From Oculina patagonica (taxonomy: Eukaryota): a stretch of DNA of 64,000 nt. The notes beneath the pieces were generated by a model, which saw only the letters and a program-made list of their open reading frames with translations, ran no database searches and was not told the origin of the DNA. Below, in pieces: positions 19,909-30,142 of the stretch (the first letter of the stretch is position 1; the number at the start of each line of letters is the position of its first letter). The position numbers were made by a program, and so were the translations under genes. Location: positions 17,174,001 to 17,238,000 of the forward strand of contig NC_135768.1 of assembly GCF_052425735.1 (NCBI RefSeq), given 5' to 3'.

Positions 19909-21451
19909 TTTTAACCTTAAGAGGACATATGCACAAAAATCACACAAAAACGAAAATTCTTGGCAAGTGTTGAAAAATGAATTTCGTTTATATTCTTACC
20001 ACAGGTAGGCCTTAATATGAAACAAATCACTGTATACTTTGCTTGGCTAAATATCGATATGTTTTTTAGAAAATCGATAATACTTGAATACGGCAAAAAT
20101 GACGCTTTCGGAGCTCAAAATTTTCGCCGAGTTTGTTAGCTTCGCGTCAAAAAATAAAGCTCTCTGGAAGAAAAATACCTATTAAAAATCGAAGAATGAC
20201 ATCAAATCAATACGTCGAAAGCAATTTCTGCTCTTCGAGTCCTTTTATTTACAAAATTTATTTAAATTTATTCGACACACTTTTGATTCGATTCAAAATA
20301 GGTCAAACTTTTTGAATAATTTAAGTATGAGCGAAGCGAAATAATTGGTCTAAAATTTGGTATTTGAAAGATAAATGATTGTTCTTTTCGATACTAAAAG
20401 TATTTCCTGGGGAAATGATTTAGTGCGATGCTTTCAAGTCTCAAAGTTGCTTAAAATTCGTTAATTTAACCGACCGTGACATAGTCGATCTTATCAGCTT
20501 TATGTAAACACTTCACGCGAAGGTTAAATTTACCCCACGTGAACTTCAACTGTGTAAAATTAGTAATTAAGTAAGTAAGTAAAGTCTTTATTTAACGGGG
20601 GTAGCACTAAAATAGCATAAAAAAATACTAAAAAACCAGTGGCCCTCTAAAATTATTACAATAAAAATATAAAAATACACTAGAATACGAATATTAAAAC
20701 TATGGATAAACTATGAGACAATAACTATGAGACAATATAACGAATAAAAATACAAGAAATACGAAAACATAGACTTGAAAAAAAAAAATTGACTTGCTTA
20801 CCTTGGTGTTCGCTGATACATTGTAAACGCTGTTTTCCTTATTTACGACAAACCCTAAGCCCTCGGCGAAGCTGGTTATCCGATTTTCTTGACGCGCCAT
20901 TTGTAGCTGATTTCCACGTCTTGAAGTGACAGTTCTTCTCCATGCATTCTTGAAAACAGTCCAGTCTTAACTGATCAATGTCAACAGGGGTACGAAGTAC
21001 TTTGCTTTAAATCAACTTTAAACTTTGCAGCAGTGGTAGATAAATCGATTCGGCCAGCGAATCTTCATTTCGAAAACCGCCATTTGAGATTTGTCGGCCC
21101 TTTGTCCTGCGGTATGCAGATAATTTATTTCACACTGGAGTAACTTCCGGCACATGAAGTCGACAACCACCGTGACCAGATAGCACCCTGCCTTTTGGTA
21201 TATTGGTTGAGGCACTATATTTTTATTATATTAATATAAGATCTGAATGAAAAACATCTGGACTGAACATGTAATTAAGTTTCACTTCAGTAAGCCACCG
21301 TTCGAGAAAGTTGCTAAATGGTTGCATGACAGCGCTTTTAATTTCCGGGTCGAAAGTTCTCCTGTTGCATTGCTTCGCTTTATTTCATATCTTTTAATCC
21401 AGTCCTTACCCTTGTCCAAATTCTTGAGCAGGCTAAGGCAAAACAGGTGTA

Positions 21452-21625
21452 CAGTCAACTCTCTCTTAACGGATACCTCTATAAGACGGTCACCTGGTGT
21501 TGGTCCCGTCCCTACCGTTTTTCAGTCATTTTTAAACTAACTAAACTCCCTATAAGACGGACACCTCTTTAAGATGGACAGTTGGAGCCGGTCCTGAAGG
21601 TTCCCGTTTTGGAGAGAGTTGACTG
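21452..21625. mobile_element. Tc1/mariner (pogo-like) MITE
   Basis: TA-CAGTCAACTCTCT ... AGAGAGTTGACTG-TA. Confidence 0.85.
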
Positions 21626-21720
21626 TACACAAAATCTAAGATGAGTAGTGAGGGAAGCACCGAATTAGCCGTTCCCGTGGGGCGGAATCTCATTAGCGTG
21701 GGGCGGAATTAATTAAGTAG

Positions 21721-21895
21721 GTGACGTCATAGGGGCGTACGTGACGTCATCAAAATGGGGCGTAAGTGACGTCATCAAAATGGGGCGTAAGTGACGTCAT
21801 CAAAAATGGGGCGTAATCTAAAAATAGAAAAATGACATCATCTCGGGGCGTAAGAACGTTGGGGCGTAATCTAAAAATAGAATAGTGACATCACA
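21721..21895. repeat. 25-bp minisatellite containing CRE palindromes
   Basis: GTGACGTCATCAAAATGGGGCGTAA units; TGACGTCA at 21722, 21742, 21767, 21792. Confidence 0.85.
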
Positions 21896-22896
21896 ATACC
21901 CCTGGGGTTAACGTCATAAAATGATGAAAATATAACCTAGAAATAAAATAGGGATAACATTGCCTTCATCTTGTTTATTGTCGCAAAATAAAATAATATT
22001 TTGATATAGGTTAAAGAATCTGCATTCAGAAGTCTTTTTAAAGGCAAAATTATCGGTATATTTAAGTTTTGTGGAGCAGCCGACCGAAAAGTCATGGGAG
22101 CGATTATTTCTCGTTTCCATTCCAACTCGGGCAATAGTTCGAATATAATGTATGCAGGTTGGCGCAATGTTTTGCTGTGATAGACCAAAGTGGCATTTTC
22201 ATAGTCCCCGCATATTTGGATCATCTCTGGTAAGTTTTTTTGCTTTATGTCCAAACTAGAATTAAATAACTTCGTGAACCTCAATCAACTAACGCCAAGA
22301 TTTATTGCACGCGAATTCGCATCAACTTGAACTAGTAATTAGTTTACGAAATCAACATTTCACTGGCACTTTTTTGTGTAACGAAATTACCTTTGTAAAG
22401 TTCAATGATGTCATAATTTAACTTTCTACTCCATGGCGGTAGCTTTTTTTTTCACCATTTCACAGAACAGACATAAGTACCGATTCATTTCGGTCAGATC
22501 ACTAAATTCAGTAATTATGCAAGTTGTCTTGTTGCATACATTTAGTATCGCAGACATCATTGTTTTTAAAACAATGGTAAAGACTCGATGTGCTCTAGTG
22601 AACAAAGCATGCCCAATCGAAAAATAAAAACAATAGCGTGTACGCGCTTCAGTGACCTCATAACCGCTTATTATAAAAAAAATTATCGGAACAGAGTTTA
22701 AAAAAAGTTATTCACTAAAGCACACAGATATTGGAAGGTGCCAGTTTAGAAGTAAACACTAAGCCATTTTAGCGAGCTTTTAGTGCCAAAGCGAATTGGT
22801 GCGAACGTAACAATAATCAAAACATCTTTTATTCATCAAATACACAACTTTACAAGACAAAAGATAGCAGTTTCATATAAAGAAAAAACACTTGTT

Positions 22897-27766: not shown

Positions 27767-27873
27767 GTGTTTTGTTGACAAATACACGCACGCGCTGGCC
27801 GCACAATGAACGAGTTCAAGTTCATTCGAGTTCATTGTGAGGCCAGCAAGTGCGTGTATTTGTCAACAAAACA
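27767..27873. repeat. Fold-back repeat
   Basis: GTGTTTTGTTGACAAATACACGCAC ... GTGCGTGTATTTGTCAACAAAACAC with paired inner arms. Confidence 0.8.
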
Positions 27874-28686
27874 CGAACGGAGAGACTCTAACCTTTTTAA
27901 TATACAATCTGAGTACACTGCAAGCGATCATCGTCTTAACAAACTTCAAACAATAAGCTTAATGTTTAAAAATAAGAAGTGTAGTAGTACATAATTACAC
28001 GGGATTACATCAATAATATAAAAATCACAAATAAGCCGTACAGAAATAAAGCTTAAAATGGTTAATAAAATCGTTCATCAGCTGTAGTCGTTCATAAATA
28101 CAGTCAGCGAGAAGCTTGTTCAAAGCAAGTCGATGATTTTCACATTCAAGCAACTACAAGCAAGTCAATCGCACACAAAAAATGTATTTATTGAGCTGCA
28201 GTTTACCTTTGAACATGAAAGCGCTTCAAGTTGTTATCCTCTTCGATAATGTTTGGTATTGGATCGTTGATAATTTGAGGAATCATTTTTCTTCCACTTC
28301 TGCAAGCCTTGAGGCTGAAGACACTTTCAATAATGCACGATTTTTGTGCATTATTGTCAATACTGCACTTTCGGAGTTTGCTGACGACAGGTAAAGCAAA
28401 ATCACATGATCTATTTTAACCAATTGCGCGCGCGGATTTTGGACAGTGAACGAAGATTGTATATTAAACCTTATTACTGACCAGAATGCACACACCATAC
28501 CTTTTCTAAGACCAAAATGGTCAAAACCTATACCCTCAGGCTATTTCAGACTGAAGTGGTTTAAGAACCATACTCTTCTGCACCCTGCAAACCTATATAG
28601 CGTATATAAAGGGTACCTCCTCTTCCGTGAGTAAGACCGACCAAGTATAGTAGAACTTCTATTTAGTGGCACACCTATTAAGCAGG

Positions 28687-28984
28687 GAGGCGCGGTGGCC
28701 TAATGGTTAGCGCGCCGGACTCCGGAGCGAGCGTTCCGGGTTCGAGCCCTGGCCGGGGTCACTGTGTTGTGTTCTTGGGCAAGACACTTTACTCTCATAG
28801 TGCCTCTCTCCACCCAGGTGTATAAATGGGTACCGGCGAAATAATGCTGGGGGGTTCCCTGCGATGGACTAGCATCCCATCCAGGGGGGAGTAGAAATAC
28901 TCCTAGCTGCTTAATGCTAAGGAAACCGGGATAAGCTCCGGCAGTATGCGCCACTTTGGCTCGAAGCTGACCTTTTTTTTTTTT
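28687..28984 (+). mobile_element. Full-length tRNA-derived SINE
   Basis: A box (TGGCCTAATGG), B box (GGTTCGAGCCC), T-rich tail, 12-bp TSD CTATTAAGCAGG (28675-28686, 28985-28996). Confidence 0.92.
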
Positions 28985-30142
28985 CTATTAAGCAGGCACT
29001 CAGAAAATTCCCGAAACGACTGCAAAACTTTACTGTAAACTTCAAGTGACCTTCATTTAGCGCGGTCACTTGTATTAAGCGGACACGGTCAGCATTATGG
29101 AAAAATTAAGGACACATGTACCTGCCATTGACCTTTGTTAATTTATTAACAGAAATATGTTAATGTTAAAAGCAGAAAATGTGCTTGCTGTAAACAACTT
29201 GAAAAGATAAATTTTTGCTTTTCTTCTCAGTGTGTAGTCGAAAAAAAACTGGCACTATGTCTGGTTAATGTTTCCTTTTTTCAATTGCTTGAAATCAAGA
29301 TTCGATAAGCGATATTTAATTCCCTTAACGCATCAATTTTCGAAATCGGAAGTGTTGGTCACAGGAAAATGCCCAATGAGTAAAATCAAACATCGTGAGT
29401 TTCCTTAAAACAGTGAGTTTCCTTAATTAAATTAATCGATTTTAGCCAAACAAGGTATACTGTGATTTATTTCATATTAAGGCCTACCTATGGTAAGAAT
29501 ATGAGCGAAATCCATTTTACGACTCTTACCGGAAAATGTTTAACCGTAAGTAACATGGGCTCTTAAATATCTTCGTAACTAAAAATGGTATTTGAAAACG
29601 GAAAACGCCATTTTGAATCTTTCGTTGAATACTCTTTGAAACGCCTAAAATTGCAAGGGGTGAAAATTTGACCATAGTAGCACTTTAAAGAAAACGAGAA
29701 AGCTTAAATAAATGTATGTGCCAGAAAGGCAGTTAGACAGTTCGCGTCAAAAAGCGTATTTTAGTTTGCTTTTATTAGTTATCTTTTGCACTTTTGTTTT
29801 GGTTCATTGCCAGTCTCAAAGTGTGCGGTTAACATATTTGGATTTCAAGCGTTCTTTGTTGACTCTTCGTTTGCCTCTGGTCGCCATTTATGAAGAGTTA
29901 AAAAGAGAATAAGACATAAAGACCATATCTAAAGAAATTGCTTTTTTTCCCCGATTACCTTTTAATACTTTTAGCGCATGTTTTCTGCAGGTGACAGCAA
30001 GGTAAACATGGACATGGAGTCCTTCCCCTATTCAAGAATCAGTAGTATAGAAAAAAAATTCTTTGGCCTGTTATTCTGTCGAAGTGTAATAATGTATGCA
30101 GGGTCTTCAAGTGCAGTAATGTCTGAATTGCCAAAGAAAGCC

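Follow-up and report, generated by a model that had tools for sequence, protein, structure and literature searches.

A complete GPCR gene inside a TTAA-flanked transposon copy of the coral Oculina patagonica, probably captured from another chromosome

How did an intact GPCR gene that is unrelated to its neighbours come to lie between the ends of a single transposon copy, inside a cluster of other GPCR genes? The locus belongs to a stretch of 64 000 nt from the genome of the scleractinian coral Oculina patagonica (the window, to which positions refer unless a chromosome is named). At 19917-29566 of the window, a TTAA-flanked single insertion of 9.6 kb is a copy of a non-autonomous DNA transposon, and its gene is the following.

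25516..26499, minus strand: intronless, intact coding sequence of a rhodopsin-class, peptide-receptor-like GPCR (327 aa plus stop)

The assignment to the rhodopsin class (class A) follows from the uninterrupted frame, a full-length 7tm_1 domain (PF00001, E=8.5e-38, profile positions 1-259 of 260) and the DR(Y/F), CWxP and NPxx motifs, present as DRF, CWTP and NPVIV and common to the paralogues on chromosome C5. The closest solved structures are those of tachykinin, NPFF and orexin receptors. Identity to the GPCRs of the local cluster is 25-30 %, compared with roughly 30-83 % among the residents themselves, in agreement with a first-pass annotation of this DNA that had described the cargo as an intact peptide-receptor-like GPCR unrelated to the cluster.

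The surroundings of the element consist of a repeat that was interrupted by two insertions.

19094..19318, plus strand: outer repeat, left half (over 200 candidate copies; split by two insertions)
19319..19908, no strand assigned: hAT-like MITE, a separate insertion with CAGGGG..CCCCTG ends and an 8 bp duplication, TTTTAACC
19917..19920, no strand: left TTAA target-site duplication
29563..29566, no strand: right TTAA target-site duplication
29567..29688, plus strand: outer repeat, right half (joined to the left half without a break in 12 other copies)

At the left end, TTAA (19917-19920) is followed from position 19921 by GAGGACATATGCAC; at the right end, CATGGGCTC runs to 29562 and is followed by TTAA at 29563-29566. 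The element thus has TTAA on both sides and GAG...CTC termini, as originally described, and, also as described, it contains no transposase ORF. Its inverted repeats are indeed imperfect, measuring 90 nt at 87 % identity (19962-20051 versus 29441-29530) in place of the earlier core estimate of 70/78. In the 12 copies of the outer repeat that were fetched, its two halves lie side by side with one TTAA-like site at this position. Their spacing is exactly that expected for a single TTAA plus a single copy of the duplication made by the neighbouring insertion, and the closest copies read GCTTAAAT at the insertion point. This continuity check, which the first-pass annotation had proposed, bears out its view that the outer halves rejoin when the insertion is removed. 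The duplication of the MITE, TTTTAACC, is found at 19311-19318 and 19909-19916; the element does lie beside another insertion's target-site duplication, but the second copy directly abuts the TTAA and the supposed one-base gap does not exist. In the paralogous block (18644-19067 paired with 60705-61096, and 29690-30008 with 61139-61460), 42 bp form the counterpart of the 10.6 kb at the insertion site, matching the reported absence of about 10.6 kb. Other copies of the outer repeat run through this point unbroken, with a single TTAA, and the full 9.6 kb must therefore be inserted DNA; together with the TTAA duplication and the presence of both family termini, this shows that the whole was one transposase-made insertion.

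The two ends of the window copy are both of the 'ATGT' subfamily of a transposon family with roughly 300 copies, here called family A. In the O. patagonica genome we counted at least 97 left termini (exact matches) and at least 127 right-type termini (up to one mismatch allowed), while reversed-pattern controls returned none of either type. The target site was exactly TTAA at 53 of 60 ends examined and one base off at the other 7. Paired ends mostly enclose copies of 4.5-5.4 kb with inverted arms of ~1.24 kb, short members of 364-1044 bp are present, and no transposase ORF was found in nine full-length copies. Longer pairs of ends, 9-24 kb apart, also occur, at C7:16023840-16034930, C4:50149424-50162390, C8:2264272-2274565, C13:19711986-19722115, C12:18308596-18317734, C1:47187536-47209928 and C8:29883309-29907789. 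A 15.7 kb pair on C14 was considered as a second pack element and discarded, as it consists of two or three separate family A copies and a nested retrotransposon. P-like transposases (PF21787) were likewise discarded as the autonomous partner, none being located between paired family A ends (0/9 loci). Judged by its sequence, family A is a non-autonomous, TTAA-targeting DNA transposon family with long inverted arms ('foldback-like') and Kolobok-type ends, and its target-site duplications and copy number suggest that it has been mobilized.

A TTAA target together with 5'-RR..YY-3' termini is the published signature of Kolobok elements (PMC9587614, PMC6004289), the termini setting them apart from piggyBac. 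TTAA is found at family A ends and on both sides of the window copy, and the GAG...CTC termini read GA..TC. On target site and end sequences, family A fits Kolobok, and to this extent the original Kolobok reading stands; no autonomous partner was found in the nine full-length copies or at the PF21787 loci, and beyond these features Kolobok membership is putative. PiggyBac elements also target TTAA, and their termini differ from the Kolobok RR..YY (PMC9587614). Family A agrees with piggyBac in its target, but its GA..TC termini argue against that superfamily. The usual piggyBac ends are CC..GG. A literature search on Sola3/TTAA yielded nothing bearing on the classification of family A. The family resembles the XKol and T2-MITE elements, Kolobok transposons of Xenopus, in its TTAA duplication and 5'-RR..YY-3' termini (PMC6004289; PMC9587614), and positions 2-10 of the 'ATGT'-subfamily termini repeat AGGACATGT, which is the terminal motif given for XKol subfamily A3 (PMC6004289, Table 5). 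It differs from Kolobok in that no Kolobok transposase is tied to it, and inverted arms of ~1.24 kb with an asymmetric outermost ~40 bp are no described Kolobok hallmark.

Within the window copy, the parts of the transposon itself are interspersed with other mobile DNA.

19921..21643, plus strand: family A left terminus, long arm and ~100 bp of family internal sequence
21644..23441, plus strand: fragment (arm and internal part) of family B, a second long-arm transposon family
22897-23364, minus strand: 'orphan' ORF inside the family B fragment
23446..23865, plus strand: young nested high-copy repeat of ~420 bp, 96-97 % identical to many copies
24028..24877, plus strand: family A internal segment, ~77 % identical to copy L061 and collinear with L066, L067 and L069
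29433..29562, minus strand: family A right terminus, ~130 bp left of the ~1.24 kb arm

The left part matches the nine full-length family A copies compared (L061-L069) at 85-91 % identity and a composite locus on C14 (L070) less closely, at 79-89 %, and 217 bp at 20561-20777 are extra, not being present in other family A copies. The right terminus is 88-93 % identical to right-type ends at other loci, and the interior of the window copy is collinear with that of the same three copies as its internal segment. The contiguous family B unit is also found at C5:8130643, C12:26475515 and C14:7171490. The orphan ORF had no Pfam match and no Atlas match, and its position within the internal part of the family B transposon led us to reject it as captured host coding sequence. 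The segment 23442-24027 was rejected as a second host-derived filler, being mostly the young 420 bp repeat, which includes a hairpin at 23688-23842. At least three later repeats are nested in the 9.6 kb element. The remainder of the cargo, previously taken for ordinary intergenic-like DNA, is instead the family B fragment that holds the orphan ORF, plus these nested repeats.

The DNA that accompanies the GPCR gene has a different origin.

24868..24873, no strand: left capture junction, 6 bp microhomology CGAGGC common to family A internal sequence and the C5 donor
24878..29417, minus strand: captured DNA, collinear with C5:10360214-10363897
27744..28468, no strand assigned: nested very high-copy repeat of ~730 bp, edges approximate, missing at the C5 donor
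28640..29035, no strand assigned: second nested, extremely high-copy repeat, edges approximate, missing at the collinear C5 donor
29418..29432, no strand: right capture junction, ~15 bp filler containing a locally duplicated GTGAGTTTCCTTAA

A donor locus without TIRs, which the first-pass annotation had suggested seeking, was found on another chromosome, at C5:10360214-10363897. The captured copy amounted to ~3.7 kb and has since grown to 4.5 kb through the insertion of two repeats, of which the ~730 bp repeat must have arrived after capture as it is missing at the donor. It comprises the whole gene with ~0.64 kb of 3' flank and ~1.75 kb of the original 5' flank, and collinear C5 homology is limited to 24868-29408. 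Between the window and C5, the non-coding parts have a K2P distance of 0.14-0.20. The C5 locus is only 86 % identical, and the actual parent could have been a paralogue since lost. In the genome, the cargo was found only in the window and at the C5 donor, with no other TIR-flanked copy. The 18 kb of C5 around the donor contain no family A sequence and no transposon ends, and no family A end or footprint was found near it. A tandem pair of genes at this locus (C5b-C5a) matches two adjacent GPCR genes on a contig of another coral, flanks included. This synteny of the C5 pair with another coral's cluster, and its freedom from transposon ends, establish at the level of sequence comparison that the donor was the tandem cluster of GPCR genes at C5:10.36 Mb and that copying ran from C5 to the window.

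Both inner breakpoints fall within transposon sequence, away from the transposon termini, and the two copies of GTGAGTTTCCTTAA lie at 29395-29408 and 29413-29426. Identical short-read contigs cover the cargo, one of which (29110-29484) bridges the junction between cargo and right end, and no loose ends of an empty site were seen among these contigs at 29566; these contigs and the assembly may share one source individual, in which case they are not independent.

We consider it likely that the 9.6 kb element is a Pack-TIR, in which a ~3.7 kb copy of a complete GPCR gene from C5 replaced most of the right arm and part of the interior. As in other Pack-TIRs, non-transposon DNA lies between the ends of one TSD-flanked TIR element, and the parental copy, C5:10360214-10363897, is not associated with a transposon. 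The same cargo does not occur at several TSD-flanked sites, a property that marks the transposition-dependent subclass and not Pack-TIRs generally. The 6 bp microhomology and the ~15 bp filler with its local duplication point to template switching during break repair. At a double-strand break inside the element, arising either after excision or from the fragility of long inverted arms, repair synthesis would have changed template at the 6 bp microhomology to continue on the C5 locus, and would then have returned from C5, leaving a short filler junction.

Such a capture may have taken place at another locus, plausibly on C5, after which a trans-acting transposase moved the loaded element to the window. 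We regard this sequence of events as having close to an even chance. The donor is on another chromosome, whereas in-place gap filling is reported to favour donors close by (PMC8277862); the two termini deviate little from the consensus, and the 364-1044 bp members of the family indicate that small ends suffice for mobility. The arm-to-arm divergence (13 % over 90 nt) is similar to the cargo-donor K2P of 0.14-0.20, which suggests that capture took place around the time when family A was active, and a weak hint comes from the longest match to the family B fragment, the second filler, which is likewise on C5. Against it are the lack of any other TIR-flanked cargo copy in the genome and of a family A end or footprint near the donor, as well as the finding that single-copy Pack-TIRs mostly arise without transposition (PMC8277862). 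An ordinary 5 kb family A copy could instead have inserted here first, with a later internal break repaired from C5, in which case the gene itself never transposed. This course is possible though somewhat doubtful: it agrees with the single-copy state of the cargo form, with long inverted arms as plausible fragile sites and with the pattern described in PMC8277862 (internal breakpoints, one with microhomology and the other with filler), but the donor is interchromosomal. The present data fit both courses.

Two other readings dispense with a capture by one element. The right end is only ~130 bp and the element is a mosaic, as might be expected if resident DNA happened to lie between a left element and a right-end fragment unrelated to it, or if two elements flanking the donor had moved together. 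This composite is highly improbable, being contradicted by the host repeat, which is continuous elsewhere with a single TTAA, by cargo boundaries that lie inside transposon sequence and are not TTAA-bounded termini, by a donor that has no family A ends around it, and by two ends of the same subfamily. Scarcely credible is the view that the GPCR is ancestral here and was lost from the paralogous block by deletion, or that it is a retrocopy or a plain segmental duplication unrelated to the transposon, even though the gene is intronless and missing from that block. The continuity of the outer repeat in other copies excludes a deletion in the duplicate block, and it is the C5 locus, not the window, that is syntenic with another coral; these two facts contradict this reading. 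Moreover, the C5 homology includes ~2.4 kb of non-coding flank, from both sides of the gene, there is no poly(A) tail, and parts of one element bound the cargo on both sides.

Returning to the Pack-TIR, its gene has been maintained. The window GPCR and its C5 paralogue differ by a dS of 0.214 and a dN of 0.042, with 74 CDS differences from C5a, and the K2P distance of the CDS is 0.08, against 0.14-0.20 for the flanks. On the window lineage there were 21 synonymous and 15 nonsynonymous changes (binomial p=6.5e-6 against neutrality), and purifying selection has acted on the gene along this lineage. No run recorded as RNA was found; of four sequencing runs compared, one that is possibly RNA gave only short contigs over small parts, at 93-95 % identity, which likely represent a paralogue or another species. 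The outcome appears to be a dispersed new GPCR paralogue, probably functional, inside an unrelated GPCR cluster. Of the Kolobok-type gene transduction that had been proposed, the single TTAA-bounded element with a captured intact GPCR is confirmed; transposition of the gene is not, the pack form being single-copy, and the general dispersal of GPCRs that was added to it rests on one documented case. It is rather unlikely that a foldback-type Kolobok family in corals recurrently takes whole promoter-bearing GPCR genes between chromosomes by transposition. Were it so, functional receptor paralogues would be seeded outside their home clusters, providing a recurrent dispersal route for coral GPCR repertoires; one locus alone does not demonstrate that transposons shape these repertoires.

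In plants, there is ample documentation of genes captured by cut-and-paste transposons, and the cases documented in animals mostly concern short, non-functional fragments; such events are known in animals, but examples this large and well preserved are rare. Here, the donor, the direction, both breakpoints, the target site and the continuity of the host repeat are all identified, for a whole gene with flanks that was duplicated to another chromosome in a TTAA element and kept under purifying selection over a synonymous divergence of ~0.2. Animal Pack-TIRs were described by Tan et al. (2021, Nat Commun; PMC8277862), with Kolobok examples listed for Xenopus laevis, XR_XL and XFB_XL (Supplementary Data 1). 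Like them, the coral element is a TIR element that contains non-transposon DNA, has its parental copy at another locus unconnected with a transposon, shows microhomology or filler where the internal breakpoints lie, and exists as a single-copy pack form. It differs in the size of the captured piece (~3.7 kb versus a published median of 224 bp) and in the capture of a whole gene with flanks that is under purifying selection, and its host is a scleractinian coral, whereas no cnidarian appears in the main text of that study. Pack-TIRs are thereby extended to a coral and to whole-gene scale, and comparison of this locus among related species could decide between in-place gap filling and capture followed by transposition. 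Ssk-FB4 of Drosophila melanogaster (PMC8277862) is likewise a non-autonomous element with long inverted repeats (foldback-type) and a complete, apparently functional protein-coding gene. That element is multicopy and polymorphic, which proves transposition, and has 9-10 bp duplications (MULE-like); the coral element, in contrast, is single-copy, TTAA-targeting and old (dS ~0.2). Plant Pack-MULEs and Pack-TYPE elements (PMC5861414, PMC8903248) are also non-autonomous TIR elements and likewise pick up sequence from host genes, but they belong to a different superfamily, are abundant and carry mostly gene fragments, whereas the coral element carries one complete gene in one copy.

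The 9,650 bp at 19917-29566 of the window (C11:17174001-17238000, a chromosome-scale contig) are one insertion, bounded by TTAA at both ends as the first-pass annotation had proposed. The left end reads TTAA|GAGGACATATGCAC (19917/19921) and the right end CATGGGCTC|TTAA (29562/29566), and the imperfect terminal inverted repeats that it had noted pair 19962-20051 with 29441-29530 (90 nt, 87%). The insertion lies in an outer repeat, beside a second transposon, and the following features were distinguished:

19319-19908, hAT-like MITE in the same outer repeat, ends CAGGGG..CCCCTG, 8-bp duplication TTTTAACC
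19921-21643, left arm of the element family with ~100 bp of internal sequence, and an additional 217 bp at 20561-20777
21644-23441, fragment of a second long-arm family, containing the 'orphan ORF'
23446-23865, young high-copy repeat of 420 bp
24028-24877, family internal sequence
24878-29417, captured DNA
25516-26499, minus strand, GPCR coding sequence (327 aa, full 7tm_1 domain, E=8.5e-38)
29433-29562, final ~130 bp of the family right end

The orphan ORF has no match in Pfam or Atlas, and its location within the second long-arm family speaks against its description as cargo; likewise, the supposed 'ordinary intergenic-like DNA' outside the captured block is other transposon material. The repeat at 23446-23865 matches many copies at 96-97% identity (659 first-look candidates), contains an internal hairpin with 56-nt arms and is apparently a MITE that was active recently.

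A genome search with each element end returned ~300 candidate loci per end. TTAA preceded the family ends exactly in 53 of 60 inspected cases and as a one-base variant in the remaining seven. TTAA plus the left-type terminus occurred 97 times in the genome, and TTAA plus the right-type terminus 127 times (≤1 mismatch), against none for the reversed-pattern controls. Pairing of terminus coordinates gave element lengths of mostly 4.5-5.4 kb, and of 9-24 kb in a few cases. In full-length copies, inverted arms of ~1.24 kb begin ~40 bp inside each terminus, the outermost ~40 bp differing between left and right, and no transposase-like ORF of ≥150 aa is present. On the basis of these ends and arms and the absence of such an ORF, the family is non-autonomous and foldback-like. 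Among the nine full-length copies (L061-L069), both orientations of the internal segment with respect to the asymmetric termini were found, which suggests flip-flop inversion via recombination between the 1.24-kb arms:

Collinear: L066, L067, L069
Inverted: L061-L065, L068

Elsewhere, two or three family copies are grouped within 16 kb (L070+L073, C14:24310698-24327383), one of them split by a retrotransposon whose open frame spans 971 aa. At another locus (L004:1501-3196, C8:31787670 region) the family left arm is cut off after 490 bp and gives way to a calponin-homology-like open frame of at least 422 aa; within the stretch that the locus covers, this could be an insertion beside a large exon or another capture.

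The entire insert is absent from the paralogous block, as previously reported: the block matches the window to 19067 and, after 42 bp of its own, matches it again from 29690 on. The outer repeat between these points has >200 candidate copies, and its halves (19094-19318 and 29567-29688), which had been said to rejoin on removal, are adjacent in each of the 12 further copies retrieved, at exactly the spacing left once the element is removed with one TTAA and the MITE with one 8-bp duplicate; the closest of these copies have GCTTAAAT at this position. The window copy has two ends of one subfamily, and its interior is collinear with L066, L067 and L069. Taken together, these observations exclude both a deletion in the paralogue and the chance pairing of two separate elements. 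The right duplicate of the MITE abuts the TTAA directly, correcting the one-base gap previously described. Here the outer repeat is 5'-truncated relative to other copies, is absent from the paralogous block and terminates in ...AGTAGCACTTTAA, an end that looks SINE-like. RVT_1 reverse-transcriptase ORF fragments lie either side of the tandem GPCR cluster (226-1329 and 59634-60647), the latter in the interval that divides the paralogous block in two.

A donor locus without TIRs had been named as supporting evidence, and one was found: the captured block aligns collinearly with C5:10360214-10363897 and matches nothing else in the genome. No family sequence was present in the 18-kb C5 region, and the rest of window 18001-31000 had no further match to it. 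High-copy repeats at ~27744-28468 and ~28640-29035 interrupt the window copy and are absent from its C5 counterpart, and therefore inserted after copying. Within the second of these, ~28685-28976 is extremely abundant (summed contig depth ~1.4 million in one run), with high depth also in runs from other organisms and many variable internal joints, which suggests a tandem or SINE-like family common to corals. The donor gene, C5a, adjoins a paralogue, C5b (73% identity), and a contig of another coral carries two neighbouring GPCR genes, one matching C5a and the other C5b, along with their flanks. By this conserved pair, and by the lack of family sequence there, C5 is the ancestral location and the window copy is derived. 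In the donor 3' flank, 318 bp (C5:10360518-10360835) have no counterpart in the window, through either insertion in C5 or post-capture deletion.

The gene was rightly described as an intact, peptide-receptor-like GPCR unrelated to the cluster. Among solved structures it is closest to the tachykinin, NPFF and orexin receptors, and it shares 91% identity with C5a, 72% with C5b and only 25-30% with the resident GPCRs, which are roughly 30-83% identical among themselves. About 0.64 kb of 3' and ~1.75 kb of original 5' flank were copied with it. Against C5a, dS is 0.214 and dN 0.042; when changes are polarised by C5b, 21 synonymous and 15 nonsynonymous ones fall on the window lineage (p=6.5e-6 against a neutral expectation of 3.3:1). 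K2P divergence from the donor is 0.08 in the CDS and 0.14-0.20 in the flanks. Judged from these sequence comparisons, the window copy has been maintained by selection. The cargo shows zero differences to short-read contigs, one of which (29110-29484) spans the cargo/right-end junction, from a run of apparently the same species that may be the assembly's own sample.

At the left junction (24868-24877), family internal sequence passes into C5-type sequence over a common CGAGGC. At the right, C5 homology stops at ~29417 and the family end resumes at 29433 after ~15 bp of filler with a local 14-mer duplication. Both breakpoints thus lie within transposon sequence, away from the TTAA-bounded termini, which speaks against a two-element composite and against read-through transduction, and for template switching; capture would have occurred during repair of a break, the mechanism proposed for Pack-TIRs (PMC8277862). 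Multicopy animal Pack-TIRs prove transposition, whereas single-copy ones come mostly from gap filling inside a resident element (Tan et al., PMC8277862). The loaded form here is single-copy, which favours capture in place, inside a resident family copy, and counts against capture elsewhere followed by transposition of the loaded element to this site. However, the donor is on another chromosome, which speaks against in-place capture and leans slightly towards transposition, as do the similar ages of arm and cargo divergence. We give capture elsewhere with later transposition somewhat less than an even chance, and regard in-place capture as a somewhat less likely alternative. The same cargo was found between no other pair of ends, and this single case is insufficient support for the suggested general dispersal of GPCRs by the element.

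The published Kolobok signature, a TTAA target with 5'-RR..YY-3' termini, sets Kolobok apart from piggyBac (PMC9587614). The family has both features, and its GAGGACATGT is close to the AGGACATGTC that ends Xenopus XKol subfamily A3 (PMC6004289, Table 5). The proposed Kolobok type would accordingly hold at signature level only, because neither the full-length copies nor the P-like transposase loci linked a transposase to the family. The supplement of PMC8277862 already lists Kolobok Pack-TIRs from Xenopus, so the kind is known; this is an unusually complete Pack-TIR, with a coral host, a 3.7-kb whole-gene cargo and evidence of selection. Nine loci encode P-element/THAP9-like transposase domains (PF21787; e.g. 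C12:29387651 and C6:31875986), none inside paired family ends; with stop-free open frames of up to 728 aa, they may be intact P-like transposons or domesticated genes.
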